Of a DNA stretch of 29,136 nt, positions 1,381 to 29,136 are shown one piece after another. Below the pieces are notes generated by a model. It was given only the letters and a program-made list of their open reading frames with translations. It was not told the origin of the DNA and did not search any database. The first letter of the stretch is position 1. Each line of letters opens with the position of its first letter. Source of the DNA: Octopus sinensis (Eukaryota); assembly GCF_006345805.1 (NCBI RefSeq), contig NW_021834109.1, positions 1 to 29,136 on the forward strand, read 5' to 3'. Position numbers and translations under genes: made by a program.

Positions 1381-1870
1381 TTATAATATAGACTTTTTAA
1401 TAGAAGAATTTCTCCTCTTCGTAACGTCAAAGCCTTCCAAAAAATACAATTGCATATGTTTACTATATTCATTATCATATAATTGAGAGCCATTTTCAGT
1501 TCCATCAAAATATATTTTCACTACATTTGAAATATAAGTCTCCGATAGTTCAGATTGAATGTTTATTAATTTCGAAATCATTTTTTTTAATTCACTCGAT
1601 TTCATACTTATCCTACAAATATGATAACTGTCGCATATTTATATTCAATAATGTCTCATAATAATTTTCATAAAGATCGCCAATACAAATTTCTTCATAT
1701 AGGACATTTGAAAAAGATAGTTGAAAAAAATTGACGATCCCCATATCAAGGAGTTCAAGAATGTATTCTTTGGAAATTTTAGGAAAGTAAGATTTGAATA
1801 ATTTAGACATCTATGACAAGTAGCATTATCAGGAAGAATTAAAATTTTTCTATTTTGTGAAAACATTTCA
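1381..1870 (-). mobile_element. Second pogo/Tigger-type transposase remnant
   Basis: RKILILPDNATCH...SNLTFLKFPKNT, then LDMGIVNFF in another frame, matching DNAxxH / FLPPNTT / QPLDxGII. The 1381-1640 part is assigned by position only. Confidence 0.6.
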
Positions 1871-2281
1871 TCATTAATTTTTCGTAACCAATTGTTAAAA
1901 AGAAAGAAATGAAATCAGAAATTAGTAGAGCTATATGGGACCCGGGAGTCAGTCCGACGAATCGAGAGGCAGTTCCGACGTAGAATAGAGACCGAAACGC
2001 GCTTGAAGAGCCAGCTCGCCTCCCTCCGGTTATGCGTCTTCAAGGTAATTTTATCGCCGAATCCGGAAATTGAAATTCCATTTTGTCTCAAATTCCTGAA
2101 AAGTTCAAAAACAAAAATTATTTTAAAAAATGCCCTAATAAGCGGGGTCGATAATATTTTAGTTTAGTATTCTATTAGTAGAAAATTAAATAAATTGCTA
2201 TAAAATGGACTTTATAAATAAAAGTACCCCAAATATGGAAGGTGCCCCAAGGCCAAGGTTTTATTGGGGCGGAGGTCGGAC

Positions 2282-2684: not shown

Positions 2685-2957
2685 TCTTTTATTATTCATT
2701 TTTTATACTGTTACTTTCTAAAACATAGCAGTTCAGCTTCCATACTCATTTATGGCGGATGGATGACAATCATTGTTATTCTTTGAATGATACCATCATA
2801 TTTTGATCGCATTCGTGAAGACCTTGAGCTCATGAGGAAGGACTCCTGAGTCTACTCCTCTTTGAGTCTATTCTGATTATTCGACGGATTGGTGTGATTC
2901 TATTGAAAAAGAATAGTTTTCAATAACTCTTATAGTTTATAATGTTTTTATTTACAA

Positions 2958-3478
2958 AAAATAGTTTGTGAAATCGTGGATGAAGTCATTGTGATGACAA
3001 ATTTGAACATCAATCAATTTGAGGGTTGTTCTGTCGTAATCGGGAGTTTTTACATGATGCTTCAAGAGTACTGATTGCAAATTACTATAAGTAGAATTTT
3101 TCGAATCGAGAACTTTAAATATTTAAGTTGAGTCCAGGCACTGAGTGGATACATCATCTTCGCCGTTCCCAATGAATTACAAACTCTTGAGTTTCTTAAA
3201 AATTTGATGTATGTAGAAGGAGAAGAACTGTATTTTTTACAACTGAGATATTTTAGGTTTGGAAGACTCGGTTACTATATTCGGAGATAAATCCTCAAAA
3301 ATAAAAAATTGGGAGTTAAGAAATTTGACGTGATTAAAGGCGGCTTGGATATAGATTTGCCGACAGTCTACTGTTATCATTTCGCTTACTTAAAGGAAAG
3401 ATGCAAACATAATAACAATGATCTGAAACTAGATTGCCGACGTAATTTTAGGCGATGACATGGGAGTATTTTTCTCAT
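2958..3478 (-). CDS. Exons of an unidentified protein-coding gene (partial; related copies near 5939-6450 and 8907-9165)
   Basis: Frame NLQSVLLKHHVKTPDYDRTTLKLIDVQICHHNDFIHDFTN; against unit 2, five differing codons are synonymous and two are not. Full model not resolved. Confidence 0.45.
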
Positions 3479-4269
3479 TTAACTGTTAAATAATCTTCTG
3501 TTCTCGTTAATTTGTCTTATCTGATTTAATCAAAGTTTTGTCGTTTCATTTTAAAGTTAATTTATAAGAACTATAAGAATAGTACTTTCACATTCACACT
3601 CCAAAAAAAAGAACTGTAGTTGAGTTAAACACCTCTTTAAAAAATCAAATAATAATTAACTATGCCTTTCGCAAAAACTTTAGGATGGAAGGAAAGTTTA
3701 GAAACGACTGATTCATAATAAAAGACCAAGCAAAAAAAGCTATTTGCCGATATTTTAGTCCTCTATTGAAAGAGAGCAAAAAAATAAAAACCAAAGAATA
3801 TACTGGTGCATCAGTCCTAGCTATTTTGCAGGAGGTTATACTCTCCTTTTTTCCATTTCCACTGTCTGCAAATGGTCTAGGCACGTGATGCCCACCTCCA
3901 CGATAACAATCTCTCCAGGAAAAAGTAGTCTAATATTTTTTAGTTTAAATTGCAATTTACAAATATTAAATAAAGCAGAAAAAATAAAATTGAATAAAAT
4001 AAATTCAAATTTATAACTTTATAACTCATCAAAGAATTAACATTGTGAATCACTTAGCAAAGATTATAGTTTAATAAATTTAATTTATTTGATAAAAAAA
4101 ATTTGTTGTTTTTGCAATCATAGTCAGGAGTTTCGGCTGGAGTCAGCTCAAAGTATCAATAAAATATAAAGACAATGTTCGTTCCAATATCTCCCAGGGC
4201 CATCAGTTTAATTTGAAACGGATTAAATATCCTAAAACATTTAGATGTTGAATGAACTAACCTTTGTTT

Positions 4270-4740
4270 ACAAAAAAATATCCATCACACAAAAAGACGG
4301 GCGATATTTCGAAGCAATCGCAACTTGAAATACGAAAAAAGGGAGACTTTGTATGCTCTAGGCATCAATCAATTCGGGGACATGCTATTTAATCACTTCT
4401 CTAACTAGTTAGGAATTTGGAGAAATGCATAAAGGATCTCATTTTGATCTCAATTTACCCGAATTTCAAGAATTTAGTTCTAAATCCGAATTTGGAGATA
4501 ATTTTGACGTCCCAGTCAACTTTAGTTGGGTGTGACTGATGTTAAAAGTGAAGGGAAAATGTGCATCCTGTTATATATTTGGAGCTATATAAGACACTAA
4601 TCAATTTGTAGTTGGGAAGTTTTGAAGGCCAATTCGCTATTAAATACGGCAAGCTTGTTAGCTTCAGTGAGCAGAATGTACTCGACTGTTTAAAACGGAC
4701 GGTTGGGACGGAAGCTAAGAGTTGGTTGGTCAAGAATAGG
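4270..4740 (+). pseudogene. Cathepsin L-like (papain family C1A) gene, frameshifted, copy 1
   Basis: I29 prodomain RRAIFRSN and YALGINQFGD, then DVPVNFSWV, TDVKSEGK-CASCYIFGA and SFEGQFAIKYGKLVSFSEQNVLDC, matching LPxxVDWR / VKNQGxCGSCWAF / LSEQNLVDC. Confidence 0.75.
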
Positions 4741-5640
4741 TAGAATCAACAGTTTTTAAAATACTTAACGATTTTAGAATGAATCGATTGAAATATTCTG
4801 CGCGCAATTTGTATATCTGAAATTTTGTGTGGTGAAATAGTTCGAACTATGTCATGTAAGTAAAAAATAATATTTATATTTATTTTAGTCATCAATTTCA
4901 CAAAGATTGTATAGATCCTTGGCTTTTTATGAAAGGAAAATGTCCATTATGTCAAAAAAACTTTTATTTCTTTAGTAGAAGTATAAATAAAGTTAATCAC
5001 TCTATAATAATTGAAAATATTTGTTTTAATAAGTGATTGATTTGGAAAATTTAACGACTTAATTATAAATAATTTAAAACTGCTGCCGTAAAAATTTCCA
5101 GATGCAATCAGCTTAGATATTGATAAATAAACTCGTTAAAGTTTAATATACACTACTGGACTCTTTAGAATTGTAATAAATCTGAATCTATTTTTTTTTA
5201 ATTATTTTACTACCACGTGTAGATGATCAATAAAATGAGTAGGACGTGGTCATATAACGTCACACATCTAAGTGAGCAAATTTTACTAAGTTACACAAAA
5301 CTTTATGGAGTGTGTCAAGTAATTCTCACATGAAGCATACTATTTTTTAAGAGTAGGTGATAGCCAGATAATTTGAAGGAGTTGACCAAACTTAAAGAGA
5401 ATTTAAACTTAAGCAAATCAGCTTAAAAGTCCTTGAAAAAAGTTCTTTATCAGGACGCATAGCCCACATACTTCTCTGATATCAATTTGCGTCAGTCGTT
5501 GGTATAAATAAAACATACACAAAAAATCCATAATTTAAAATTGAGTTTACTAAAAAGACATATTTCAATTGATTTTACAACCTGTACATACAATATGTTG
5601 TCAATTTTCTTTTAAAATAAAATTTATTTTTCTTCTAAAA

Positions 5641-5836
5641 ATGAAATACTTACTTTTAGCTTGCTTTTTATTAATTTCTAAAACTACTGTGCAAATTCCG
5701 GTATCTGAAGAATTTTCTATTTTTAAAGAGTTGGAGTCCAGGTGGTTTCGTTAATTTTAACGAAGACTTTAATAATTATCCACTCGAAGAAGAAGATGAA
5801 AATTCAGATATTCGTAAACCATTCCGATATGGATGA
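5641..5836 (+). CDS. Secreted RYamide-type peptide precursor, 55 aa (exons 5641-5700, 5729-5836), copy 1
   Basis: MKYLLLACFLLISKTTVQIP|SWSPGGFVNFNEDFNNYPLEEEDENSDIRKPFRYG* after removing a 28-nt GT-AG intron: hydrophobic leader, acidic spacer, RK, terminal Gly. Confidence 0.7.
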
Positions 5837-7229
5837 ACAGATCTTAAAATTACTAATTAATCATTATCACTAAATTACTAATCTATTTAATTCTTTAATT
5901 CCAAGAAAAAGTTCCAAAATAAATTTTAAACATTTTGAGTTTGTGAAATCGTGGATGAAATCATTATGATGACAAATTCTAACATCAATCAATTTGAGCG
6001 TTGTTCTGTCGTAATCGGAGTCTTTACATGATGGTTTAAGAGTACTGATTGCAAATACTCTAAGTATAACTTTCGAATCGGGAATTTTAAATATTTAAGT
6101 TGAGTCCAGGCACTGAGTGAATACATCATCTTCGCCGTTCCCATAATTACAAACTCTTGATTTCTTAAAAATTTGATGTATGTAGAAGGAGAAGAACTGT
6201 ATTTTTTACAACTGAGATATTTTAGGTTTGGAAGACTCGGTTACTATATTCGGAGATAAATCCTCAAAAATAAAAAATTGGGAGTTAAGAAATTTGACGT
6301 GATTAAAGGCGGCTTGGATATAGATTTGCCGACAGTCTACTGTTATCATTTCGCTTACTTAAAGGAAAGATGCAAACATAATAACAATGATCTGAAACTA
6401 GATGCCGACGTAATTTTAAGGCGATGACATGGGAGTATTTTTCTCATTTACTGTTTAAATAATCTTCTGTCTCGTTAATTTGTCTTATCTGATTTAATCA
6501 AAGTTTTGTCGTTTCATTTTAAAGTTAATTTATAAGAACTATAAGAATAGTACTTTCACATTCACACTCCAAAAAAAAGAACTGTAGTTGAGTTAAACAC
6601 CTCTTTAAAAAATCAAATAATTAACTATGCCTTTCGCAAAAACTTTAGGATGGAAGGAAAGTTTAGAAACGACTGATTCTAATAGAAAGACCAAGCAAAA
6701 AAAGCTATTTGCCAATTTTAGTTTAGTCCTCTATTGAAAGAGAGCAAAAAATAAAAACCAAAGAATATACTGGTGGCATCAGTCCTAGTATTTTGCCGGA
6801 GTTATACTCTCCTTTTTTCCATTTCCACTGTCTGCAAATGGTCTAGGCACGTGATGCCCACCTCCACGATAACAATCTCTCCAGGAAAAAGTAGTCTAAT
6901 ATTTTTTAGTTTAAATTGCAATTTACAAATATTAAATAAAGCAGAAAAAATAAAATTGAATAAATAAATTCAAATTTATAACTTTATAACTCATCAAAGA
7001 ATTAACATTGTGAATCACTTAGCAAAGATTATAGTTTAATAATTTAATTTATTTGATAAAAAAAATTTGTTGTTTTGCAATCATAGTCAGAGTTTCGGCT
7101 GGAGTCAGCTCAAAGTATCAATAAAATAAAACAATGTTCGTTCCAATATCTCCCAGGGCCATCAGTTTAATTTGAAACGGATTAAATATCCTAAAACATT
7201 TAGATGTTGAATGAACTAACCTTTGTTTA

Positions 7230-7700
7230 CAAAAAAATATCCATCACACAAAAAGACGGGCGATATTTCGAAGCAATCGAAACTTGAAATACGAAAAAAG
7301 GGAGACTTCGTATGCTCTAGGCATCAATCAGTTCGCGGACAGGCTATTTAATCACTTCTCTAACTAGTCAGGAATTGGAGAAATGCATAAAGGATCTCAT
7401 TTTGATCTCAATTTACCCGAATTTCAAGAATTTAGTTCTAAATCCGAATTTGGAGATAATTTTGACGTCCCAGTCAACTTTAGTTGGGTGGACTAATGTT
7501 AAAAGTGAAGGGAAAATGTGCATCCTGTTATATATTTGGAGCTATAAAAAGACTAATCAATTTGTAGTTGGGAAGTTTTGAAGGCCAATTCGCTATTAAA
7601 TACGGCAAGCTTGTTAGCTTCAGTGAGCAGAATGTACTCGACTGTATTAAACGGACGGTTGGGACGGAAGCTAAGAGTATTGGTTGGTCAAGAATAGGTA
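7230..7700 (+). pseudogene. Cathepsin L-like gene, frameshifted, copy 2
   Basis: Same motifs as copy 1 (YALGINQFAD, VPVNFSWV, CASCYIFGA, LVSFSEQNVLDC) with different 1-nt indels. Confidence 0.75.
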
Positions 7701-8606
7701 GAATCAACAGTTTTTAAAATACTTAACGATTTTAGAATGAATCGATTGAAATATTCTGCGCAATTTGTATATCTGAAATTTTGTGTGGTGAAATAGTTCG
7801 AACTATGTCATGTAAGTAAAAAATAATATTTATATTTTATTTTAGTCATCAATTTCACAAAGATTGTATAGATCCTTGGCTTTTTATGAAAGGAAAATGT
7901 CCATTATGTCAAAAAACTTTTATTTCTTTAGTAGAAGTATAAATAAAGTTAATCACTCTATAATAATTGAAAATATTTTGTTTTAATAAGTGATTGATTT
8001 GGAAAATTTAACGACTTAATTATAAATAATTTAAAACTGCTGCCGTAATAAATTTCCAGATGCAATCAGCTTAGATATTGATAAATAAACTCGTTAAAGT
8101 TTAATATACAACTACTGGACTCTTTAGAATTGTAATAAATCTGAATCTATTTATTTTTTAATTATTTTACTACCACGTGTAGATGATCAATAAAATGAGT
8201 AGGACGTGGTCATAATAACGTCACACATCTAAGTGAGCAAATTTTTACTAAGTTACACAAAACTTTATGGAGTGTGTCAAGTAATTCTCACATGAAGCAT
8301 ACTATTTTTTAAGAGTAGGTGATAGCCAGATAAATTTGAAGGAGTTGACCAAACTTTAAAGAGAATTTAAACTTAAGCAAATCAGCTTAAAAGTCCTTGA
8401 AAAAAGTTCTTTATCAGGACGCATAGCCCACATACTTCTCTGATATCAATTTGCGTCAGTCGTTGGTTATAAATAAAACATACACAAAAAATCCATAATT
8501 TAAAATTGAGTTTACTAAAAAAGACATATTTCAATTGATTTTACAACCTGTACATACAATATGTTGTCAATTTTCTTTTAAAATAAAATTTATTTTTCTT
8601 TTAAAA

Positions 8607-8803
8607 ATGAAATACTTACTTTTAGCTTGTTTTTTATTAATTGCTAAAACTACTGTGCAAATTCCGGTATCTGAAAAATTTTCTATTTTTTAAAGAGTTG
8701 GAGTCCAGGTGGTTTCGTTAATTTTAACGAAGACTTTAATAATTATCCACTCGAAGAAGAAGATGAAAATTCAGATATTCGTAAACCATTCCGATATGGA
8801 TGA
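8607..8803 (+). CDS. Secreted RYamide-type peptide precursor, 55 aa (exons 8607-8666, 8696-8803), copy 2
   Basis: Same protein except S13A and a synonymous Cys codon; the only indel between copies lies in the intron (29 vs 28 nt). Confidence 0.7.
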
Positions 8804-9174
8804 ACAGATCTTAAAATTACTAATTAATCATTATCATTAAATTACTAATCTAAATTAATTCTTTAATTCCAAGAAAAAGTTCCAAAATAAATTTTAAACA
8901 TTTTGAGTTTGTGAAATCGTGGATGAAATCATTATGATGACAAATTCTAACATCAATCAATTTGAGCGTTGTTCTGTCGTAATCGGGAGTCTTTCATGAT
9001 GGTTTAAGAGTACTGATTGCAAATTACTATAAGTAGAACTTTTCGAATCGGGATTTTAAATATTTAAGTTTAGTTCAGGCACTGAGTGAATACATCATCT
9101 TCGCCGTTCCCATAAATTACAAACTCTTGAGTTTCTTAAAAATTTTGATGTAGTAGAAAGGAGAAGACGTATTT

Positions 9175-12112
9175 GTTGCTATGTCCTTCAATGTCAGAGG
9201 TCTGAAAACCGTGGCTAAGAGGCACCTTCTATGTACTGATCTCGAAAAATACCAGGGCTCTATATGCTGTCTACAGGAGACTAAAGTAAAACACGGACTT
9301 GACGAAATACACGGAAATTATCGCCTAATACTGCTTCCCTCAGAATCTATACATTATGGACAAGGATTCGCAATACACAAGAACCACACCTCCAGACTAT
9401 ATCGATATTGGAAAGTCAGCGATAGGATCAGCGTCTTACAACTACGTACAATCTCAAGCAGCAAGTCGAGGAGACTCACGTCAATTGTCAATGTCTACGC
9501 GCCACACAGTGGACGTATTCAAAAAAATCCAGAAGAACTTGATATCTTCTATGAGGAATTAGGAAGGACATTAACAGACCTCGGTTCTTCGTACTTTCTG
9601 TTTGTTGCCGGGGACTGGAATGCGAAAGTTGGAACCCGTAAGGAAACGAAAGTTTTATTGGCCATCACGGAAGAGGAATCAGAACTATCCAGGAACTGTT
9701 CTAGCTGAATTCTGTCGGGTCTTTGACCTATTCCTATGCAACACCGGTTTCCAGCATCCCGCGCGTCACAAAACGACGTGGACTGGCCAACGACCCTCAC
9801 CGACCGCAGGGTCCGTCAACATTTTCAACCAAATTGACTACATCGTCTGTCGAGCCGGGGAAAAATCGCTTCTCCGAGACTCAAGGTCTTATGGAGGTGC
9901 AGCTACTTACAGTGATCATAAAATTGTCTCTGCCAAGTTTGCTATGAAGACATCAATTGACCTACGACGAAGAGGGCCCAACGCTGATGTAAGGATAAGG
10001 CATAAAATCGAACAACTGTGCTCATCTACGCTGGTCAGAGACAACTACCAACTGTCAATCATGAAATCTCTTGGAAACATAAATGCCGAACTTTCTCCAG
10101 GAGGTGCCTGGGCGGAGACAATGAAAGGGATCCTCTTGGCAGCCGACGAGGCAATTGGCCTTCGGTCGCAAGTACTATGCAACAAAGGTATACACTCTGA
10201 TCTCCCTGCCCTCATCAAAGAACAAAAGGAGCTAAGACTACAACTGGAAAACACATCTGATCCGAAGAAGAAACAAATCTTACAGAATAGACGTTCATCT
10301 ACCCAGAAAAAAATCAAAATGTTGAACAAGACAAACTTCACTAACAAACTCGACTTAATAGCTGCAGGAATTGAACAGCTAAAGGACTCTTCAAAATGTT
10401 TACGGCAATCCGCCTACTCAACAGGAAAAACACAAACTCAAATCCATGACAGCAATGGAAGATTCATCACAAATCCCAAAGAGCAGGCTGAATATATAGC
10501 CTCGTATTTCGAGAGTATATTAACCGCTCACGGAGAAATATCCGATTACACCAGCGGATACACCACTCATCTCAGCCTACCTATCACCACCGGTGAAGTA
10601 TCAACTGCAATAGCCAAACTTAAAAATGGCCGCTCCTCTGGACCGGATGGAATAAATTCAGAACTGTTTTAATACGGACCGCCTGCACTAACAGACAAAC
10701 TGGCGGAGCTACTCAATGGTATGTTTATGAAAAAGGAATTCCTCGGTCTTGATTCCGGATTATTAATACCGATCCAAAAGCCTAACAAGCAGGCTGGGCC
10801 TGTCGAAAATCTACGCCCTATAATCTTGCTAAACACCTTACGGAAACTTTTGGGATTAGTTACACTGAACCGAATAAGAGAACAAGTGGACAACTATCTA
10901 TCCCCGAGTCATAGTGGATTTAGGACAGGAAGATCCACCGCCGATGCTGTTTGGGCCCACAAGTGGTACTGCGCTATCACCCAGAGATACAAAAAAGTGC
11001 AAAACAGTCCTGGGAATAGACCTGTCTAGGGCCTTTGACACGGTACGCCGTGGTCTACTCCTCAAAATACTGGAACAATTCCTGGACCCTGACTCTGTCA
11101 ATATGATAAGAGTACTACTATCGAACACAAAGCTCAAGGTGCGGGTCGGCACGGCGTTTTCCCGTGAATTCACGTGCAACGTGGTACCCCTCAGGGAGAC
11201 GCCCTCTCGCCGTTGCTATTCGTGATCTATCTGGAGACGGCACTACGAGACCTTCGAAAATTCTATGCTGGCAATATCGTCGAAATTGTATATGCAGATG
11301 ACGTCGACTTCGTGTCAGACGACAAATCGGCCTTACTTCGACTCCTTGAAGTGGCACCTGCTGAGCTGAACAGATGGTTCCTTAAAATGAACGTTGGAAA
11401 AACCGACATCGTTGAAATCATGAGGATGGAGAGCAGCTCAAGTGAAGCCTGGCGCAAAACGAGCAAACTCGGTTCTCTACTTGGGGACGGCCATGATATT
11501 GTCAGAAGAAAGGCTCTCGCTTGGGCCACGATGAACAAGATAAAGAAAGAGTGGATCGGCAAACGACGACTCTGTACGTCACTTCGTCTGAGGATGTATG
11601 AAGCCTTTGTCAAACCAATCCTGACATATAATTCGGCGACCTGGGGAATGTCTAGTACTGAACAACGTGGACTCGATTCTTTTCACCGCAGGCAACTTAG
11701 ATCCCTACTGGGATTGAACTGGCCTATAAGAATCAACCAGGAATCGCTATACAATAGATGCAGAACTGGCCCTCTGAGTGTGGAAATCGTTAATATGCGG
11801 TGGAGGTTATTTGGCCATATTCTACGAATGGACATGCTTGCCCCAGCTAACATAGCAATGGAGGGCTACTTCCTGAAGAGGGATCGAGCTTCCGTGGACG
11901 TCCACGTGTTACGCTGCCGGAAACACTTGACGGAGACCTGAAATGTGTGAAGAAAAGGCTAAGGAGTGGTGAGGATCTGGACAAGCTGAGGAAACTCGCT
12001 CACGACAGAGGAGGTTGGAGGAGGCTGGTTCAAAGGATTGTTTTTAATGCTGCACGAGTAAAATTATAACTAATATGATTCTACGTATGTTGCAAATAAT
12101 AATAATAATAAA
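9175..12112 (+). mobile_element. Non-LTR retrotransposon (LINE), APE endonuclease plus RT, RTE-like; stop at 10670 and several frameshifts; (AAT)5 tail
   Basis: SFNVRGL..CLQETK, VYAP, GDWNA, IDYI, SDHK (APE); GPDGI, RPIILL, IDLSRAFD, GTPQGDALSP, YADD (RT); DRGGWRRLV C-terminus; AAT repeats at 12095-12109. Confidence 0.95.
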
Positions 12113-13415: not shown

Positions 13416-13847
13416 ATTATGCATGACTTGAGTGCTCAGTCGATCATGAATAGAAGGCACGCTGTCACAAACAGGGAATATAGATAAGAAACCTTAATTC
13501 AAATATCTGAGCAGAATCAAACGTCACTGAAGATGGGAAAAAGTTGAAGAGAATTTGGTAGAATTGACTAATGATTGACGAGTTAATTAAAATATTGGAG
13601 CAGACTAAAACTGTCATTGATTAGCTTGTTTACTTATAATTTAAAGTAAATTACTTATGGCCATATGGCCATATGGATACGAATTTATAAAACCTGCTTT
13701 CATTCTATTGTAAAATGCTACAGGCTAAAAAAGTCAGGTAATGAAACAAAAGAAACAAATAAGGATCTGCTGTAAATGCAACCCTCAGTGGTTGCATGGG
13801 GCATAAAAAGGAAACGCCTCTTTTTTAACACCAAAAAATTCAATTTG
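13416..13847. repeat. Degenerate repeat family copy A, possibly decayed hAT-like coding sequence
   Basis: Aligns with 14822-15347; shorter related pieces near 12495-12530 and 12870-12960. Plus-strand MIDELIKILEQ is only weakly hAT-like. Confidence 0.8.
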
Positions 13848-14821: not shown

Positions 14822-15347
14822 ATTATGCATGAATTAAGTGGTCAGTCGATCGTCAATAGAAGGCACGCGTTACAAACGGAGAATACAGATAAGAAACGTT
14901 TATTCTAATATCAGAGCAGAATCAAACGTCACTGAGGATGTGAAAATGAGGAATAGAATTTGCTAGAATTAACTAATGATTGACAAATTTTTTTTTCTGT
15001 ATAGAAAAATTTATCAATTAATATCGATTAATCGCAGGGAAGGCCAGAGGTCTGGCGGATCGCCAAACTGTTCCCCCGGATAACGGCAATCGAGAATTGA
15101 TTAAAATATTGTAGCAGACTAAAACTGTCATTGATTAGCTTTATTACTTATAATTTAAAGTAAATTACCAATGGCCATATGGCCATATGGATAGAAATCC
15201 ATAAACTCTGAATTCATGAGTCAGTAAAATGATACAGGAAAGAAAAGTATGATCAACAAAAAATATGTCAGCGATAAATGCAACCACTGAGGGTAGCATG
15301 GGGCATAAAAAGGAAAAGCCTCTTTTTTAAAACAAAAGATTCAATTG
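14822..15347. repeat. Degenerate repeat family copy B, with an insertion at 14985-15091
   Basis: Colinear with 13416-13847 apart from a ~105-bp insert. Confidence 0.8.
14985..15091 (-). mobile_element. Extremely 5'-truncated RLE-type retrotransposon insertion with A-tail
   Basis: Minus strand IAVIRGNSLAIRQTSGLPCD*, short 3' UTR and A9; absent from paralogous copy A. Confidence 0.7.
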
Positions 15348-15404
15348 GCATAGAATATTCATTTTTCAAACTTTAAATCAATCAATTTCAGATTTTTTGA
15401 ACTC

Positions 15405-15880
15405 TGCGCCTCGGACTAAGGCAATGTGTCCCGCACACGTGCCGCTGTGGCTGCACTGTTGACCCTTTCGGTCTGCACCCTTTATCATGCAGGAGGAGTG
15501 CCGGACGTTTCCCGAGGCACTCTGCTATGAATGACATCATACGGAGGGCCCTCGACTCGGCGGGATTTCCTTTGGTCCTCGAACCACCGGGTCTTGACCG
15601 CGGCGATGGGAAACGTCCTGACGGGATGACCCTTTTCCCTTTTGAAGGCGGAAAAGGTCTCGTATGGGATGCAACCTGCTGGGACACCTATTCTGCTTCT
15701 CATTTAACTTCGTGTGCTCTGGAGGCTAAATCTGCAGCTAAGAAGGCTGAAGATTTAAAGCTAGACTGCTAGCTAACACACAGTTTTGAGACTTTAGCTG
15801 TTCGAACTACATATTTGATCTCAGCCTCAGGGTTCCGAAGAACACAGGAGACTAGTGGTAATATTTCGTTCTTAACTGAA
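15405..15880 (+). mobile_element. RLE-type (CRE-like) retrotransposon: zinc knuckle and restriction-like endonuclease fragment
   Basis: [85 protein letters not shown], then FETLA after a break. Confidence 0.85.
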
Positions 15881-16119: not shown

Positions 16120-17346
16120 ATGGTGATAAGAGTGCGGGATGTGGAGTGGGGCCAATCGGAGAGTGCATTATATCTCAAACTTGAACTGCATGGGAGCAGT
16201 CCGTCGTCGGTGGACATTGTGTGCACGAGGAGATACATCAAAGTATATAACCCCACCAATCAGGCCAATTACCAGCCTTACTTGTTTGAGTGTCTGCTCT
16301 ATGCAGATGTGGAAGAGGACGAGTCAACTGTGGTGATAAAAGAAGGACAAATAATGTTCAATCTGAGAAAAGTAGTCCCCGAAGTGTGGCCGACGTTCAT
16401 GTCGGAGGGTAGGGAAATGAAATAAGTTGCAGACAACAAGGAGAAGATGAGAGATGAAAGGGAGTGGAGGAAGGTGAAGGAAGACAAGAGTAGTGCACGC
16501 AAACAAATGGCAGTGAGGGCGGCCATTGCTGTACTCATCCCATCACACTTGCCCAGCTCGACTCAGAGAAGACTAGTCAAATCGAGCTGTTCAAGGAAAA
16601 GGAGAACAAGAAAGTGGCAGATGGACTGACAGCCCTGAAGGTGGCCTCCCCGAGTCATCCATCGACCACCAGACAAAATGAGTCTCCTAAAGAATTCCCA
16701 ATTCGTGATGCCGGGAAAATAAAAATGTCATTCACTGAGCGATATTTCCCAACACCCTCTCGGGAGTCGAGGGCGGAAGAGGAGGAGGAAGTGAGTGGTG
16801 AATCATAAGTGGCAGTGGTTGAGGAAGCAGGCGAGTGGTTGTCGGATCACAGGAGGGGAGTTGGAGTCCAACCCAGTCCTCATAAGGGACAAAGCAAAGT
16901 AAATATTCACAATATTCAGCAAATTTTACATTCACGGAGACTACGATTCTGCCATAAGCGCCTACTCCCACGGAATATCCCTCAGCCCAGGAATGCCCTC
17001 GTATTCCCCACTGTACTTTCAACAGACTCTACTCCAACCGGGCAGCCTCCTACCTTCAGAAGGGGTTATATTCAAACTGCATTCAGGATTGTCGCCAGGT
17101 ATTCCTCACCACACACCCAGGCACTCACACTCCTCCTCCCTCCAGTCCAGGCCAACAAACATAGTCGTCTGAAGGCGCTCTGTCGAATGGGGACTTCCTA
17201 CTTTCACCTTGGAGAGTATGGGGAAGGTGGGAGTATTCTGGCATCCTCTAGCTCGGGCTGCCCTTGAGAGTGCTCTTTCAATCGACCCCCTCAACCCACA
17301 ACTCCTCAGTGATTTGGAGATGATCAAGACGGTTGTTAACCAATAA
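16120..17346 (+). CDS. DNAAF4: Dynein axonemal assembly factor 4 (DYX1C1), 345 aa, CS/p23 domain plus TPRs. Introns 16243-16263, 16409-16432, 16531-16556, 16791-16815, 16899-16919, 17001-17025, 17099-17120, 17227-17251
   Basis: Spliced frame is open end to end and colinear with DYX1C1: VRDVEWGQS, YIKANYQPYLFE, GKIKMSFTERYFPTPSRES.AEEEEEWLRKQA, LYSNRAASYL, LKALCRMGT, ALSIDP. Confidence 0.92.
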
Positions 17347-18975: not shown

Positions 18976-19576
18976 CGAAATTAAGATTGTATTATGTTTT
19001 ACTGAATTCATATGAAATTGATTTATAATTATCGTTGATAATAACCTTTTTGGTTGCAAATAGGATAATAGTCGTCCTTATGAATGACGATCGGTCTTCC
19101 GCTGAAAATGAAAGAGAGACAGAGAGATATTATTGACCAAAAGACCAGGGTAAGCAAGTTAATTATAATTTCAAGTGATCCCCGATATCGCAAGCTTATT
19201 TTAGTATTTTTTTGTAAGATGGATAATTTTAGGCTTAGTTTTATTCACCAAGGCAAGTCTGAGCTTCTTTATTTAAAGAGAAGTACGATTTCCAACGTCA
19301 CAGGTTTCAAAGACAAAGGAAAAAGCACATTTTTTATTTTTGTCTATTTGCCATAATGTGGAATTTCAAAAAGTTACGGAAGATACCCGAAGTTGACTTT
19401 GATCTCTGAGATGAAGCTGTCTTTCAGTTGTTTTAAGAAAGTGGCTTGCATTAAACGCGACTTTCTCTAATATCTTATACTGTAAAAATCAAGCAGACTT
19501 ATATCTTGAATTTAAATAAAAATTGATAAGAATGAAAAACAATTGATGTTAACATTGATTTATCCCAAATTAAGAA

Positions 19577-19760
19577 GGCTTTGTGGTTGGTCGTAAGTGA
19601 TGCCTGTTGCCATCGTATGGTTGATGTGAACATGATAGTATTATGAAAGTAATACTCTCAGGTTTGAATAATGAGGGTCGTACTGGCTCAGGCCGGAAAC
19701 GGAGCAGGCAAAAGACCCCGCTTCTTCTATACGGTGATTACACCAATGGCGTCGCTTTTT
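19577..19760 (+). ncRNA. Signal recognition particle RNA (7SL), unusually short (~180 nt)
   Basis: Helix 8 motif CAGGCC-GGAA-ACGGAGCAGG (19689-19708) inside GGGTC/GACCC; helix 6 AGTATTAT-GAAA-GTAATACT; helix 5 pairings 19597-19604/19748-19755 and 19611-19620/19727-19736; T5 at 19756-19760. Confidence 0.9.
19756..19760 (+). terminator. RNA polymerase III oligo(T) terminator of the SRP RNA
   Basis: TTTTT directly after the 3' strand of helix 5. Confidence 0.75.
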
Positions 19761-20460: not shown

Positions 20461-21870
20461 GAAATCTCCAAGTGAATTTGGTGGACCACGTAACGCCTTT
20501 CTAAGGCCGGATAGGAAGTCTTTAGATAGAAAGTCTTTAGAGTCAATCTCCCGTATGCGTCTTACACGGGTAGTTTAGTGAAGCCAACTGACGCAGGTTC
20601 GACTTTGAGTTAAGTTTGTATAATGTATTTAGGCAGAAGAATGGTTTTAATTCATTAATCAAATTATTAAATTCTTCTTTACATTATTCTAGTTTTTTTT
20701 TATTTTAATGTTAATATAAGTGAAATTTAATAATAAGTTCTTTGACTTCCATGTTATAGATCAACATTATGTTTTTATTTTCATAAAAAAACACGTCTTG
20801 AACAATCCTATGTATTATAAATGGCACATACTACTTATAACTATGGATAGAGTTGTTTCAAAATGCTGTTAAAATTACATGGATAAAATAACCCTTGAAT
20901 AATCAACGAAAATTTATATCCAATCCGTTATACTGAAAAGGACGCTTGAAAGTATGTTGATTAAACATAAGTATGGGATGAAGGTATTTGGTGAAGAATA
21001 TACCTTCGCTACCGACCTACCCGTGGTACTGGCATTCTTGTGGGATACTTCAATTAAAGGTATGAGACACATAACTTTATCTATGGTAGAAAATTCTCCC
21101 CTTTAAAAAGGAAAGAGATTTCCAACAGTAAAAAGTCAAAATCTCAATTAAATAGTGTAACCTTGATTAAATTTTGTTTTGTTTTAATAAAATTTTCTTA
21201 TAACTAAATTAATTTTTACTCAGTCTTAAAACATAAATATTATTTCGCGAGGCTGGCCGGGTGTCTAGTGAGGCCTTTAATTTCTTTCTTGTTTCTAACT
21301 AAAAAAAATGAAGCATATTGTGACAAAATGAGACATTTAATGACTAATTATGATTAAATTAATCTATCCATCCCTTTTAACATACATAAATTGACGAGTC
21401 TATTTATTCCTCCACACAGAGATGTATATTACTTGATTGATTAATATTGTTTCTAGTAACTTTTAATTGCTCTTAGATTTTACTTCAATTTTTACGTTTA
21501 ATTTTCATATTTCCGTGCAAGTTTTAATATAAATGATTACATAACAACTTGTAATATACTTTATGGAGTCACTTGTCATGTTTTTAATTTCCTTTATATT
21601 TAATTCCAAATTTAGAAATTAAAAATCCTGCAATTCTTGATTTCTGTAATCTATTTGTATTACTCGCAGGATTTTCACTTCTCTAGGCAAAACCAGTTTT
21701 TGAGATTTCAAAAAATTGAAATTGTGTAAGCTTAATTTTGAAGACTGTTGACGTTAACTCTTTTTATAAAAATAGACATAAATAGCACACAAGGAAATAA
21801 ATTATAAATATGTATAATTCCGTAGATGACGACAAATGTTAGTTTATCTGCTCATATTTATTTATCCAAG

Positions 21871-23407
21871 TATATCCCTCCACTGCACTCCCCCGACAAT
21901 GGATATGTCACAAACTACATTTCTACTCACTTATTATAAGCGTAGTATTACATGTCCAATAGAGACAAATACAACTGAATACAAGTATATTTATATATAA
22001 AATATTCAGTTGGACTAAAGATGGGATTCCTATTGACTTTGAAACTAATTACTATTTTTATAAAAATGGCAATAAGCTCGCATTTAGCAAGGGGTTCCAA
22101 GGAAATGGAATATTTCAATGTTCTGTCGAAAACGAATGTGGTTACGAAATATCTCTCCCAATGAATGTAGAGAGTCCAATACTACATATCGGTATATAGA
22201 AATGTTATAATTATAGTATATAATACATATACACTTCCATTTGCCATTCTAAGTGGAAATGGAATCACTGGCCAATGCACCTGGCACAGATGGCCCCAAT
22301 ATGCAGAGGAAATGACCAAAATTATAGGGAAAGCAGATCATGACAGATTTTATGTGGTCGACAATGATTTATATATAAAATACTTAATTGCCGAAGACTC
22401 TACGTGCAAGTATATTTGTATTGGGAACAAAGAGTTAAAATCATATTTTTTTAATTTCACTATTCAGGGTTTATTTTGATAATAATCTAAATTTTTAAGA
22501 ATCCGATTTTGATCTAATTCACTTTTTTCCAAAAACGTCAAACGTCGCGTTAGAGTTTGGAAAAGTCCATAATATCGTCCCTTGTTTCTATTTTGGAAGG
22601 TTTTCCCACCAACATTGATTTTAGGGTTGGAAACCCTGGCCTTTATTATAAGAATAATGAACTTATCTCATCTCACGTTATGAAAATAGTTGCCACTGAA
22701 AAAAAAGAACCTGAAATTTTTGCTTGTAGGTCTGAACACAAACCTCCACGAAAGAAAACCGAATTTTTATGTTTGAACGAGACATATGTAGATACGAAAG
22801 AAACTGAAAAAACATTTACTGTATCTATTTACGGTTAAAATAGTTTTAAATATTAAAGAATTGCCTGCCATTTCTGACTCCCTTCGCTCACAAAACGTCA
22901 CGTCTGGTAATACGGCGAATTTTAAATGTATTCCTGAAAAAGGGTACCCCGAACCTAAAATAAAGTGGTATATAAATTTAGAGGAATATGGTAATCACAC
23001 TATTATTACATTTAGAGACTTATTCGGATAAATTGGTATCAACACTGTCACAAAATAATTCATTTTTGAGTATTTTGACAGAAAAGTCAATGAGTATTCG
23101 ATGTCTTGTCGAAAATGATTTCGGAAAAGCTGTAAAGACTGTTTATTTGGTGGTCTCAGAACCACTAAATTTATTTCCAGATAGCCGGCAAAAGAGACGT
23201 GTGGTGTCTGCCTGGATTATTTTTCTCATATTTTTAGTAATAAGTATCATATTCATTGGAGTCGTATTTTATCGTCAATCAAAATACTCAAATAAGACAC
23301 AGAGGGACCCAAAAATATTTTATTTGACGGATCCTGAATATATGACACATTATAAAACTACGCTTTCGAGTATGGGCATTGCACGTCACCTAGTTGATGA
23401 TTTATAA
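21871..23407 (+). CDS. Ig-superfamily single-pass membrane protein (~4 Ig domains, TM, short tail); 5' exons unresolved. Introns 21985-22009, 22192-22216, 22469-22499, 22600-22624, 22834-22858, 22991-23015
   Basis: Removing six 25-31-nt introns gives 459 open codons: SITCP..WTKDG..GIFQCSVENECG; DSTCKYIC; NVTSGNTANFKCIPEKGYPEPKIKWY..IRCLVENDFG; TM AWIIFLIFLVISIIFIGVVFY; tail YLTDPEYM..DDL*. Confidence 0.85.
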
Positions 23408-24414: not shown

Positions 24415-25078
24415 ATAAAGTTAACTTTTTAAGGTTAAATTTTGTTAATTTTTAAGGTTAAAAAATGTTTTCCTAATAATTAGTTTTGTGTTTGCCTTTT
24501 ATTTTGGGTTCAGGAGTAACTGAGAAGCCGAAACTAACTAACCCTCCACCACTCCTGTCCTCCTCTCTTTGACTTAACCTCCTTGTCCATACTTCTGTTT
24601 CTCCAATGCACTGCCCAAAAGGGAAAACGCATTTGCTTTCTTTCAGGCTGGAAAGATGGAATAAGTGGACTTTTTTTGACAATCCAAAACCTTTATCTTT
24701 CATGAGGTTCTTGTTTCTCGGAGTTCAAAGTTTGGTGGGTTCTCCGTCAACTTCTAAATAGAGCAATTTTAAATGTTAGAAATTAATATAAAATAAATAC
24801 TTTGCCCAAATCCAATTCGGATATAATAAAGTCGTCTATAAATAAATATTAACCAATAAAACCTTTAAATTCTTCATCGTTAGAGATTAAAAAAGGTAAA
24901 ATGAGAAAGACAAACATTTTTATTTAACTGTGCGAAATGGTCTATTTATACCATAAAGTTAATTTCTAAGTTGAAAATTTTTCTAAATAAAGTTAACTTT
25001 TTAAGGTTATTTTTTCAATTTTTAAGGTTCATAAATGTTCGCCCTAATCATTAGTCTTGTGTTTGCCTTTTATTTTGC
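24415..25078 (+). repeat. Direct repeat of ~90 bp (24415-24505 and 24989-25078)
   Basis: AAAGTTAACTTTTTAAGGTTA..AATTTTTAAGGTT..AAATGTT..CTAAT.ATTAGT.TTGTGTTTGCCTTTTATTTTG occurs twice. Confidence 0.75.
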
Positions 25079-25259
25079 TAATCCCTCTGTGGATGAGTTT
25101 TGTAAGCTCGAGAGTGGCAATCGGTTTTTGATTTTGTGTCATTGCTTTCTAAACTTGGAGTGGAGGACCACCAGACATTCTATGCCCACAAGAAGGACTT
25201 GGGAGTTGTCTTTAAGCATGGACACGAAAATGAGCTTCTAGATTCTATAGAGTTTTCGT

Positions 25260-26540: not shown

Positions 26541-26691
26541 GCACAAGCGCCAAGGTTTAAATTTTTTGATTTATCACTACTGAGTCAATGTTCACTATTT
26601 GTTGAGTAAGCAGCCAGAGGAAAATAGGCAGCGAGATTCCAAGATGTTAGCCACATGGAGGAGAAAGTCCTACCTCGCAAAAAAGTGGATT

Positions 26692-26790
26692 TGCAGTCCC
26701 CATGTCCAGACCGACTGGTTCGAGTATTATTTGGGAAAACGACAGAATTGAGTGCTCGCGAGATGATGTCGTTAAGTGCCTCATGGCAAG
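26692..26790 (-). mobile_element. RLE-type retrotransposon fragment
   Basis: HEALNDIISRALNSVVFP, then LEPVGLD after a frameshift; homologous to 15520-15610. Confidence 0.7.
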
Positions 26791-27181
26791 GCCATACCTC
26801 CACATCGACACCGATGAGGTTAATTATAATAAAATATTTGTTTTATTGCAGTTAATTTTATTTGGAAAACCTAATGTAGTTAGATAATCACGTTAAAACT
26901 CATTATTTATTTTGTTCTATGAAAATATTCTTCCATTATATTTATGGTTTATATTTTTGTTAAAATTGATTAAATTTAAAATATTCGATATTCTGTAATT
27001 GAATTGTTTTTATTTTAACAGTATTTTAATCTTTTATTTCATCTTAACTATTTAATCTATATTCTTTTTAATCATTTTTAGACCGTTTTTATTTTGAACT
27101 ATTAGATATCTCGCCAAATACATGGCGCTAGACACAGAATAATTTAATTTTTTTCAAGTCAGAACTTTTATTAAGTTAGTT

Positions 27182-27560
27182 TTAATCACAATTACCTATG
27201 ATCGAGAAAACAATACCCCTCAGAACCGCAATGGAGATTCTTTGGAACAGCCAATTCTTCTCCCGAGACTCTCTTCGTCTTCTGGAGATCAGTTGCCCGA
27301 TTCCCCCAACGAGCTCCAGATGATTAATTAGTCATGCTCCGATGTTTCTACGGAGATTGGGGAAAAGATCATGTTGTCTGTAAAATTAACGTATTTCGAG
27401 TTTTTAAGTTCTTCAGCCTTTTTAGCGGCAGACCCTGGAATGATTGTCGAGTCGACTATATTCGTCTTTGAAAAAGTGTTGACTGGCTCGGTACATCTGC
27501 TAAACAAGGTGAGAGGGTGGAACAGAAATGTACCAAGTTTTGGCTGGCTAGAAAAGTTAA
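27182..27560 (-). mobile_element. RLE-type (CRE-like) retrotransposon 3' fragment with internal deletions
   Basis: GSAAKKAEELKNSKYVNFTDNMIFSPISVET and ESREKNWLFQRISIAVLRG..GNCD*. Confidence 0.8.
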
Positions 27561-27719
27561 ATTTCAAAATGGCCTTAATTTAAACAAATTTTATGGAGAA
27601 AACTTTTGAGCTGAATTTCCCAATTTGAAATAAATCATATAATTAAAGATTGAAACATTGGGAAATTGTCAGCACAGTCTTAGATTCAAGGGGTACCTCC
27701 TCAAAAGGCACCTTGTTTT

Positions 27720-28536: not shown

Positions 28537-29136
28537 TTATAGTATGTAACAAGTATTGTCCAATTCTTTCGTCGTGGTTAACAACATATCAATAGCTACT
28601 TGAAATACATTTCGAACATTATAAAAAGTCGTAGAAGAACATTCAATATATTTTGAAGCACCTGATAAATCAAAACTAAAATACCAAGTTTTTTAGATTC
28701 CTTTAATCCTTTTTGGTAAGAAATTAATTTCAATTCACGTCTATTTAAATCATCGATGACATCCTGACTTTCTCTAAGGTCAGTCTTGGTCCCTACAACA
28801 ATAAATGGGGTGGTCTTTGGAAGGTGACAAGTCCACTGAGGATCACATAACTCGATTACCTTAGAAGGCAGAACATTAAATGACTGAGGTTCCACAACTG
28901 AACAACATATAATAAATATATCCTTATGTCAATATATAAAAGCGAACTGTCTCAGGATATAACAGTGGCCATGCTTGGTCTGAACTTTCATGTTCTGAAG
29001 TATCAATTATTTCAAATTTGATGGGAGTAGGGCCAGACTTCCCCTGACACATCAGCTTAGTAAAAGAAGGTTTAAGAATCCGGGGGACTTTGCTGGTGGC
29101 TGGTCCGTCGCTTGTGTAACTAACAATCAAACTGGT
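28537..29136 (-). CDS. Atypical Rho-family small GTPase; N-terminus and P-loop lie outside the window. Introns 28923-28947, 28836-28859, 28662-28684
   Basis: Spliced: TSLIVSYTSD..VPRILKPS..IIDTSEHESSDQAWPLLYPETDIFIICCSVVEPQSF..SKW..PFIVVGTKTDLR..KYIECSS..NVRNVFQVAI..TCYIL*, ending in a CAAX box. Confidence 0.88.

Follow-up and report, generated by a model that had tools for sequence, protein, structure and literature searches.

A putative two-exon reading frame ending in RK-PFRY-Gly, doubled by a young tandem repeat on a probable dicyemid contig of the Octopus sinensis assembly

A two-exon reading frame and its surroundings

The window analysed here is the whole of contig VCDQ01010037.1 (29,136 nucleotides) of the Octopus sinensis assembly GCA_006345805.1. 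Direct reading of the sequence gives a 55-codon two-exon frame ending in RK-PFRY-G-stop, which is present twice and has the following parts and surroundings.

5503 to 5510 (copy 2: 8468-8475), plus strand: TATA-like TATAAATA, 138 nt before the copy 1 ATG, a motif frequent by chance at 27% GC
5595 to 5615, plus strand: out-of-frame ATG of a 6-codon uORF, upstream of the proposed start and downstream of the TATA-like box
5641 to 5700, plus strand: putative exon 1 of copy 1, ATG and hydrophobic leader MKYLLLACFLLISKTTVQIP, best 9-residue Kyte-Doolittle mean 3.4
5701 to 5728, plus strand: putative intron of copy 1, GTA...AAAG, 28 nt, phase 0, GTATCTGAAGAATTTTCTATTTTTAAAG, of the same class as the verified introns of the contig
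5729 to 5836, plus strand: putative exon 2 of copy 1, SWSPGGFVNFNEDFNNYPLEEEDENSDIRKPFRYG and TGA, GC 0.34
5814 to 5840, plus strand: alternative 27-nt intron, GTA...CAG, as canonical as the proposed one
5918 to 5923 (copy 2: 8886-8891), plus strand: AATAAA, 82 nt past the copy 1 stop
8607 to 8666, plus strand: putative exon 1 of copy 2, differing from copy 1 by Ser13Ala and a synonymous change
8667 to 8695, plus strand: putative intron of copy 2, 29 nt, differing from copy 1 by T5>T6 and G>A
8696 to 8803, plus strand: putative exon 2 of copy 2, identical to that of copy 1

The spliced product of 55 aa, MKYLLLACFLLI[S/A]KTTVQIPSWSPGGFVNFNEDFNNYPLEEEDENSDIRKPFRYG followed by a stop, runs from a hydrophobic leader through an acidic stretch to RK-PFRY-G, and the copies are alike apart from one residue. 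The first-pass annotation had arrived at this order of leader, acidic spacer, RK-PFRY and terminal Gly by removing a GT-AG intron of 28 or 29 nt, and our reading confirms it for both copies. In copy 1 the splice junction between 5700 and 5729 would read GTGCAAATTCCG joined to AGTTGGAGTCCAGG, and the two coding sequences differ at 2 of 168 nt (TGC>TGT, synonymous, and TCT>GCT, giving Ser13Ala). As had also been noted, the unspliced reading is not conserved, the frame stopping after 37 aa in copy 1 and after 28 aa in copy 2. The putative intron starts with GTA, carries an A-run before its AG, has a length that is not a multiple of three and is low in GC, all of which is in keeping with dicyemid introns (PMC13644364); its GC is 0.21, against 0.34 in exon 2 and 0.27-0.29 in the flanks.

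The leader, a candidate signal peptide, shows a clear n-region at Lys2 followed by 10 hydrophobic core residues (hydropathy 3.4), and only three ATGs in the window open a leader with a hydropathy of at least 3.0, two of them being the two copies. By the -3/-1 rule, its cleavage looks likelier after Thr15 than after Gln18. In the predicted product Arg47-Lys48 lies directly before PFRY, and both copies end in RYG-TGA. Dibasic sites fall into four types, of which RK is one (PMC9070308). Of these, RK is reportedly used least, and a Pro in the P1' position is said to be disfavoured.

An AATAAA within 100 nt is expected by chance in about 18% of cases at the local composition (by arithmetic), and NCBI has no gene model at either copy. 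If the alternative 27-nt intron were spliced, KPFRYG-stop would be lost and the product would acquire a new end, ENSDIHLKITN and a stop. In one alternative reading, the locus yields a real small secreted or translated product that is not amidated, such as an acidic secreted protein or the isoform spliced at 5814-5840, and its RK-PFRY-G end is incidental. We consider this very unlikely. Against it, no homologue or Pfam family was found in the searched collections, and the 27-nt intron is a multiple of three, though with a stop codon inside; in its favour are the gene-like features that it shares with the prepropeptide reading discussed below, an alternative intron as canonical as the proposed one, and the reportedly unfavourable RK-Pro context.

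Origin of the contig

The homology-anchored introns on the contig measure 21-34 nt, and include introns of 25 and 23 nt in a Rho-like GTPase gene (whose CAAX end, CYIL, is followed by TAA), 25-nt introns in an Ig-domain gene and a 25-nt intron in a DNAAF4-like gene. Within the animals, only myxobolids and Dicyema japonicum are reported to have introns so short (PMC13644364), and O. sinensis is a host of D. japonicum (PMC6736024). Because introns of this length occur together with standard stop codons, the contig is most likely a dicyemid-parasite contaminant of the Octopus sinensis assembly. The first-pass proposal of a dicyemid organism is thus supported by the intron lengths, the reduced GTa...AG signals, the standard code and the host.

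Three other origins were considered and rejected. A ciliate, to which the tiny introns and an Rfam match to a protozoan SRP model could point, is contradicted by the TAA that ends the Rho-like CAAX box and by the presence of Ig-domain, LINE and Tc1 sequences, and a myxozoan by the source of the contig in an octopus assembly and by its cilia gene (DNAAF4-like). The GC-rich DNAAF4 island was also considered as host DNA or a chimeric join, but its 25-nt intron restores EEEEE joined to WLRKQ, and no octopus paralogue was matched in a word search.

A young tandem repeat and the chance expectation

The two copies lie in successive units of one tandem repeat.

2963 to 5932, no strand assigned: tandem repeat unit A, 2.97 kb, with copy 1, a cathepsin-L-like pseudogene fragment and a RING-H2 fragment
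5938 to 8900, no strand assigned: tandem repeat unit B, with copy 2, 97.1% identical to unit A
8868 to 9177, no strand assigned: incomplete third unit of 94% identity, running up to the start of a LINE element (9181)

Both copies derive from a single very recent tandem duplication. The differences between units A and B are evenly spread (1.5-3.5% per 200 nt) and comprise 45 mismatches and 38 indel events, 32 of them of 1 nt and only 11 in runs of at least 4, which suggests that the indels are partly long-read consensus noise. The coding sequence would be expected to hold 2.2 indels, and the probability of its holding none is 0.12. It is true within the gene that the only indel between copies is intronic, as the first-pass annotation had pointed out, but in view of the apparent consensus noise and of this probability the argument is weak. 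Nor does the conservation between copies, which had been taken as support, hold as such: within a young repeat of 97% identity the agreement says almost nothing on selection, the coding divergence of 2 in 168 nt is not significantly under the repeat background, and from so few differences no signal of selection between the copies can be derived. Since both sit in one tandem repeat, the two copies are not independent evidence either.

The cathepsin-L fragment in the unit is truncated, and its frame is disrupted and contains a stop. The RING-H2 end fragment differs between units by a frameshift, whereas the ORF is intact in both. The possibility that the peptide leader is the signal peptide which the cathepsin-L fragment lacks was also considered and rejected, the two being 1.5 kb apart and similarity being absent. 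A repeat unit that is a patchwork of truncated gene pieces would suit a relic, the 5' end (leader exon and the one after it) of what was once a larger gene for a secreted protein, brought into the mosaic repeat along with the cathepsin-L and RING fragments and now non-functional. One option, a decayed luqin-type precursor, would account for PSWSPGG right after the leader, and PSWxPxG shares 5 of 7 positions with SAPSWRPQGRFa, which likewise comes straight after the leader in luqin precursors (PMC4208409). However, a 5-residue match found post hoc among many known peptides is weak, and neither a parent gene nor a homologue is detectable in the searched collections. We give a relic only a slim chance.

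In order to estimate how often such a locus arises by chance, we used 29-kb Markov sequences as a null set (300 of order 3, 200 of order 5) and counted the loci that combine a leader of signal type with an ORF of 45-120 aa, at most one GT-AG intron of 20-45 nt and a [KR][KR]x2-12 G-stop end. Equivalent loci appeared at 0.04 per 29 kb, in 3.3-3.5% of the sequences, and the reversed window contained none; the pattern is thus unusual in a single window, though only moderately above chance. Extrapolated to a 67.5-Mb genome, the chance rate corresponds to about 90 such loci. Leader-type ORF starts number 9 in the window, one of which belongs to the Ig-domain gene, against 3.7 ± 2 expected, and some are therefore real. 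With a codon-usage model trained on 658 verified codons of the contig, the candidate ranks by log-likelihood at the 84th percentile among stop-free null windows, a result without significance from a test of low power.

In collections that hold no dicyemids, a word-indexed search of 5.8e9 proteins gave no homologue of the 55-mer, and exact look-up of both 55-mers and of eight plain ORFs gave nothing real. A phmmer search against 1.84e9 representatives returned two spurious matches, both to tandem-repeat proteins, a degenerate-pattern scan of JGI metagenome contigs found no relative, and neither the 55-mer nor any of five further frames in the repeat unit falls in a Pfam family. The spliced Rho-like GTPase from the same contig, run as a control, likewise had no match in the searched collections; because this shows them to be devoid of dicyemid data, the homologue negatives are not counted against a gene. 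A literature search yielded nothing on PAM, convertases or neuropeptide precursors in dicyemids.

In our view, the locus is probably, though far from certainly, a fortuitous, non-functional ORF, which is the most likely single reading, and we infer that it is not expressed. It would be an orphan two-exon ORF on a dicyemid contaminant contig, doubled only through the young 2.97-kb tandem duplication, in which the Leu/Phe/Ile leader would be readily encoded by T-rich, AT-rich DNA, the acidic spacer could be supplied by a (GAA)n-like run, and very loose intron signals (GTa...AG, 20-35 nt) would let a reader bridge two short open frames. T-rich leader codons and an intron definition reduced to GTa...AG (PMC13644364) are shared with fortuitous ORFs of AT-rich genomes that have minimal splice signals. 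We favour this reading because of the young repeat, the chance rate of 0.04 per 29 kb, the 84th-percentile codon usage, the 27-nt intron that would remove the peptide, the upstream ATG, the neighbouring gene fragments, and the lack of a homologue and of an NCBI model at either copy. Counting against a fortuitous ORF are the integrity of the frame in both units, the strong leader, the dicyemid-type intron, the GC of exon 2, the plausibly placed TATAAATA and AATAAA, and the excess of leader-type starts. That the locus is a real gene of some kind seems doubtful to us, and that it encodes an amidated signal, unlikely.

Likeness to peptide families and a possible prepropeptide

Of the family likenesses considered, only the resemblance to spiralian xFRYamides survives, as judged from the predicted peptide. 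VFRYamide exists in Platynereis (PMC3503879), LFRYamide in Lottia (PMC4208409) and GSVFRYamide in the flatworm Schmidtea (bioRxiv 10.1101/712687), and the predicted C-terminus of the candidate is likewise x-Phe-Arg-Tyr-Gly, as in Platynereis RYa, Lottia and oyster LFRYa and Schmidtea GSVFRYa, which are sNPF-type candidates. The product would be an amidated tetrapeptide, like VFRYamide, and the lineage is likewise spiralian. In contrast to these peptides, the candidate has Pro and not an aliphatic residue at -4, and beyond the 3-residue end similarity is nil. Unlike LFRFa, which occurs in multiple copies, it has a single peptide, at the extreme C-terminus after RK, and it is without the Cys-containing associated peptide, Cys-bridged in LFRYamide precursors (PMC4200219). 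The xFRYamide likeness suggested at first pass may be kept to the extent that such peptides are real in spiralians and FRY-Gly is present, Pro standing at -4.

Membership in the luqin and NPY types fails on defining features. The candidate has PSWxPxG right after the leader, as in luqin/RYamide (Aplysia SAPSWRPQGRFamide), and ends in RY-Gly like the precursors of ecdysozoan RYamides (PMC4208409). The luqin comparison of the first-pass annotation is nevertheless not supported: IPSWSPGGFVNFNEDF lacks Arg-Phe-Gly-Lys-Arg when compared with Table 4 of PMC4208409, so that no RF-Gly-dibasic follows PSWxPxG, the proline-rich C-terminal domain with two Cys is absent, the candidate having no Cys after the leader, and RY-Gly stands at the opposite end of the precursor. 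As for NPY/NPF, the possible 36-residue length (I19-Y54, for which the earlier arithmetic was correct), Pro2-Ser3 and an Arg-Tyr-amide end recall this family. However, the end is R-K-P-F-R-Y and not RxR[FY]; in place of a proline-rich N-terminus and an amphipathic basic helix, the 36-mer carries 8 acidic against 3 basic residues, a run EEEDENSD and a net charge of about -5; the stop directly follows Gly, in contrast to G-[KR]-R and a C-terminal flanking peptide (PMC4200219, PMC4208409); and the only proposed intron lies after codon 20, and not in the Arg codon of the RF/RYamide (PMC4200219). The length also needs an unlikely, atypical leader cleavage after Gln18, and the NPY-type assignment is not upheld.

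With the xFRYamide resemblance retained, the locus may be a genuine lineage-specific prepropeptide gene, whose product would be PFRY-NH2 or, if RK were left uncut, a long acidic peptide with an RY-NH2 end, although we regard this as unlikely. The leader would direct secretion, a convertase or cathepsin-L-type protease would cut at Arg47-Lys48, a carboxypeptidase would trim and PAM would amidate the Gly; the target would be one of the few dicyemid rhodopsin-type GPCRs (controlling, for example, ciliary beating) or the host renal epithelium. Such a gene is consistent with the confirmed architecture, with a putative intron typical of the contig, with a pattern found in only about 3.5% of random windows, and with xFRYamides being real spiralian signals (PMC3503879, PMC4208409, bioRxiv 10.1101/712687). 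In addition, Dicyema sp. retains two rhodopsin-family GPCRs whose closest counterparts are neuropeptide receptors (PMC6543705), infusoriform apical cells have been reported to show neuropeptide-like immunoreactivity (PMC6854800), and PAM is linked to cilia throughout the eukaryotes (PMC5461114, PMC6529398), dicyemids being heavily ciliated. Against it, expression, homology and selection all find no support in the searched data, the peptide occurs once and its RK is followed by Pro, there is no Cys-bridged associated peptide such as LFRYamide precursors carry (PMC4200219), and the locus is placed in a repeat amid gene fragments. The fullest version, a first peptide-hormone-type precursor in Dicyemida, giving a secreted, amidated xFRYamide akin to RYa/LFRYa/sNPF-type peptides with a role in non-neuronal, cilia-linked peptide signalling in the parasite (infusoriform apical cells, for example) or an action on host renal-sac receptors, we consider rather improbable.

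A dicyemid is a neuron-less animal of about 30 cells, and if the product were expressed and amidated, peptidergic signalling would survive in a bilaterian without a nervous system, and the two neuropeptide-receptor-like Dicyema GPCRs, as well as host receptors, would gain a concrete ligand. As it stands, the value of the locus is mostly cautionary: genomes whose introns of 20-35 nt are marked by hardly anything beyond GTa...AG should each yield by chance tens of 'hidden' short spliced ORFs with attractive ends, and young tandem-repeat copies do not amount to conservation. As a by-product, 'dynein assembly factor 4, axonemal-like', a RefSeq protein of Octopus sinensis, seems to come from a dicyemid parasite, as does the contig that encodes it.

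The candidate precursor and the repeat that carries it

The observation made in the first-pass annotation was confirmed, and its interpretation as an amidated neuropeptide is partly supported. On direct reading of the sequence, a leader, a short putative GT-AG intron and an RK-PFRY-Gly-stop end are present in both copies of the ORF, as described.

Putative exons and introns of the candidate ORF
5641-5700, + strand: copy 1 exon 1, ATG at 5641
5701-5728, + strand: copy 1 putative intron, 28 nt, GTATCT...TAAAG
5729-5836, + strand: copy 1 exon 2, TGA at end
8607-8666, + strand: copy 2 exon 1
8667-8695, + strand: copy 2 putative intron, 29 nt
8696-8803, + strand: copy 2 exon 2

The predicted spliced product of 55 aa, MKYLLLACFLLI[S/A]KTTVQIPSWSPGGFVNFNEDFNNYPLEEEDENSDIRKPFRYG-stop, displays precursor-type traits, namely the leader, a dibasic site and the Gly-stop. 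Two base differences separate the coding sequences (one synonymous and one Ser13Ala), and the putative introns are set apart by a single substitution plus one extra T within a T-run. The unspliced frames end after 37 codons in copy 1 and 28 in copy 2, in agreement with the claim that this reading is not kept and that copy 2 stops early.

Both copies lie in one 2.97-kb tandem repeat, copy 1 in unit A and copy 2 in unit B, and are therefore not independent of each other. Each unit also carries two gene pieces, one cathepsin-L-like and one RING-H2.

Features of the tandem repeat
2963-5932: repeat unit A
5938-8900: repeat unit B, 97.1% identity to unit A
8868-9177: partial third unit, which stops at the start of the LINE element
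9181-11941, + strand: LINE element (endonuclease + reverse transcriptase), beginning where the third unit stops
4240-4760 and 7200-7720, + strand: cathepsin-L-like pseudogene fragment (part of the I29 propeptide + Peptidase_C1)
4790-4990 and 7745-7942, + strand: RING-H2 end piece (zf-RING_2, E=1e-10)
5873-6240, also 2955-3271 and 8840-9177, - strand: ORF pair (…GTAKMMYSLSAWTQLKYLKF… / …DYDRTTLKLIDVRICHHNDFIHDFTN…)

Differences between units A and B are evenly spread (3-7 per 200 nt), the left edge excepted, and the local rate predicts about 3-4 over the 168 nt of coding sequence, against the 2 seen; measured against this local divergence, copies 1 and 2 give no signal of purifying selection on the coding sequence. 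The presence of two copies does not count as an independent line of support. It is correct that the only indel, one T, is intronic and that the coding sequence has none, but this carries little weight, because the 38 indel events between the units (32 of them single-base, and only 11 in runs of 4 or more) against 45 mismatches give a ratio that is less typical of evolution than of a long-read consensus with incomplete polishing, and the 2.2 indels expected in the coding sequence leave P(0)=0.12.

The cathepsin-L-like fragment covers Peptidase_C1 profile positions 17-60 of 220, with the catalytic-Cys region KGKCASCYIFGA only, and has frame disruptions, together with an in-frame stop in unit A. 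The RING-H2 piece has a 34-nt GTAAGT...TTTTAG intron, and a 1-nt A-run indel between the units, either decay or consensus error, shifts its frame and alters the C-terminus. The minus-strand ORF pair, for which no matching Pfam family was found, occurs in all three units, is convergent with the peptide ORF and ends 37 nt from its stop. A neighbourhood made up of gene fragments counts against a gene, and an ORF intact in both units counts for one; that the candidate is the relic of a former gene we regard as improbable, and the least probable of the readings considered here.

The LINE element (Exo_endo_phos + RVT_1, 43-49% GC) is broken across several frames, and it adjoins and terminates the array, consistent with the LINE-rich genome of Dicyema japonicum (PMC6736024). 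Just left of the array lies a foldback or MITE-like element (2282-2684) made of GCATTAGTGTTAATG-like subrepeats, whose inverted arms measure about 100 nt (27 nt at 93%, 20 nt at 95%). Transposase remnants are found at the contig start (2-402, - strand; Tc1/mariner DDE_3, E=6e-12) and at 1648-1914 (- strand; pogo-like DDE_1, weak). Three related fragments, at 15401-15769 (+), 26588-26842 (-) and 27331-27579 (-), share the pattern …PDG…AAKKAEDLK…, have no Pfam match and resemble the tail of a mobile-element ORF, one being GC-rich and the others decayed. A direct repeat pair (13464-13749 and 14869-15263) has 81-85% identity at a spacing of about 1.4-1.5 kb.

Origin of the contig

Genes used to place the contig
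16120-17343, + strand: DNAAF4/DYX1C1-like gene (CS domain, acidic region, TPR-like tail)
21836-23404, + strand: gene for an Ig-domain single-pass membrane protein with signal peptide, 25-nt introns
28540-29136, - strand: very divergent Rho-family GTPase, 3' two-thirds, cut by the contig end

The window corresponds in full to contig VCDQ01010037.1 of the Octopus sinensis assembly GCA_006345805.1. The only NCBI gene model within the 6120-26808 span is 'dynein assembly factor 4, axonemal-like [Octopus sinensis]', and this 176-aa protein is the single match of the CS-domain ORF (16120-16422) in the protein collection; the Ig-domain gene has no annotation in the NCBI record. The DNAAF4-like gene lies in a 41-48% GC island in a contig of about 30% GC, and excision of a 25-nt intron (16791-16815) restores ...EEEEE|WLRKQ.... 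Since such introns are unmodelled, the RefSeq model looks truncated or mis-spliced.

The Rho-family GTPase (39% identity to human RAC1 across 86 residues) contains two introns, 25 and 23 nt long, and TAA comes directly after its CAAX box, CYIL, so the genetic code is the standard one. The homology-anchored introns of the contig, among them those of the Rho-family GTPase, Ig-domain, RING and DNAAF4-like sequences, measure 21-34 nt. According to a 2026 survey, the only animals with such tiny introns are myxobolid myxozoans and D. japonicum, with splice signals cut down to GTa...AG plus a few A residues ahead of the AG (PMC13644364), and specimens of D. japonicum have come from the O. sinensis renal sac (PMC6736024). 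For these reasons the contig, whose introns are unlike those of octopus, is most likely a dicyemid contaminant, as had been guessed, and this points to parasite sequence within the reference genome of a host.

An SRP RNA at 19542-19758 (+) scores best with the Rfam model 'Protozoa_SRP' (75 bits, full length), above the metazoan model. Such a preference is unexpected in an animal and may be a result of fast dicyemid evolution.

Chance occurrence or gene

We defined a deliberately broad class of loci: an ATG and leader whose best 9-residue hydropathy reaches 2.5 or more, an ORF encoding 45-120 aa when read either without splicing or across a single GT-AG intron of 20-45 nt, and the end [KR][KR]x2-12 Gly-stop. 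The window holds 9 leader-type starts, with the peptide-type end in the two copies only. Markov sequences (order 3 and order 5) trained on its AT-rich parts gave, per 29 kb, 3.7 +/- 2 starts of the leader type and 0.04 loci of the peptide type; at least one such locus turned up in about 3.5% of the sequences, and the reversed window had none under the same definition. The locus is therefore uncommon for one window, yet chance alone should produce about 90 like it in a genome of 67.5 Mb.

When codon usage is scored after training on 658 verified codons from this contig, the candidate ranks at the 84th percentile among stop-free null windows, which is suggestive at most. In favour of a gene are the strong leader, an intron with a GTA start, an A-run before the AG and a non-3n length, a GC content of 0.21 in the intron vs 0.34 in exon 2, and TATAAATA at -138 with AATAAA at +82. 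Against it are an out-of-frame upstream ATG at 5595 and a possible 27-nt intron (5814-5840), just as canonical, whose use would remove KPFRYG-stop. No homologues were found in protein collections or metagenome loci. The spliced Rho-like protein, a real gene of the contig, was likewise unmatched; dicyemid data are thus missing from these collections apart from the one NCBI model, and the lack of homologues is not evidence of absence.

We weighed the chance rate of about 0.035 per window against the handful of true genes that a genome might plausibly contain, and raised the odds roughly ten-fold on account of the additional gene-like features. On this basis, by weights that we infer rather than compute, a fortuitous ORF is the reading we favour, by somewhat better than an even chance, and a real gene whose product is not amidated seems distinctly unlikely.

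A further ATG with a strong leader (MFALIISLVFAFYFANPS…), at 25035-25241 (+), has several possible short-intron continuations and may belong to another unannotated secreted-protein gene.

Known peptide families and dicyemid signalling

Release of a PFRYamide had been proposed to follow cleavage at RK. RK is the dibasic site used least, and a Pro at P1' disfavours cleavage. RK itself is a recognised dibasic site (PMC9070308). The proposed link to spiralian xFRYamides holds as a three-residue likeness to VFRYamide (PMC3503879), LFRYamide (PMC4208409) and GSVFRYamide (bioRxiv 10.1101/712687), but their precursors contain either numerous copies or an associated peptide with a Cys bridge (PMC4200219), neither of which is seen in the candidate. 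The luqin resemblance is present, PSWSPGG matching 5/7 positions of SAPSWRPQGRFa directly after the leader (PMC4208409), but membership fails without RF-Gly-Lys-Arg and the two-Cys domain. The NPY-type reading of I19-Y54 as a 36-mer does not survive comparison: NPY/NPF peptides end in RxR[FY], whereas the candidate ends in K-P-F-R-Y; of the residues in the 36-mer, 8 are acidic and 3 basic; the Gly is the last residue; and the candidate lacks the intron that the family conserves within the Arg codon (PMC4200219). Its length would also require a cut after Gln18, whereas Ser13-Lys-Thr15 would suit the -3/-1 rule better.

Our search of the dicyemid literature turned up no neuropeptide precursor, PAM or convertase, and the case for plausible peptide signalling in these animals is drawn entirely from published work. 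We weigh a real amidated signal as unlikely, though ahead of the non-amidated product. Dicyema sp. has two rhodopsin-family GPCRs nearest in similarity to neuropeptide receptors (PMC6543705), antibody staining for vasopressin/oxytocin-like material is reported in the apical cells of infusoriforms (PMC6854800), and PAM has been linked to cilia (PMC5461114, PMC6529398).
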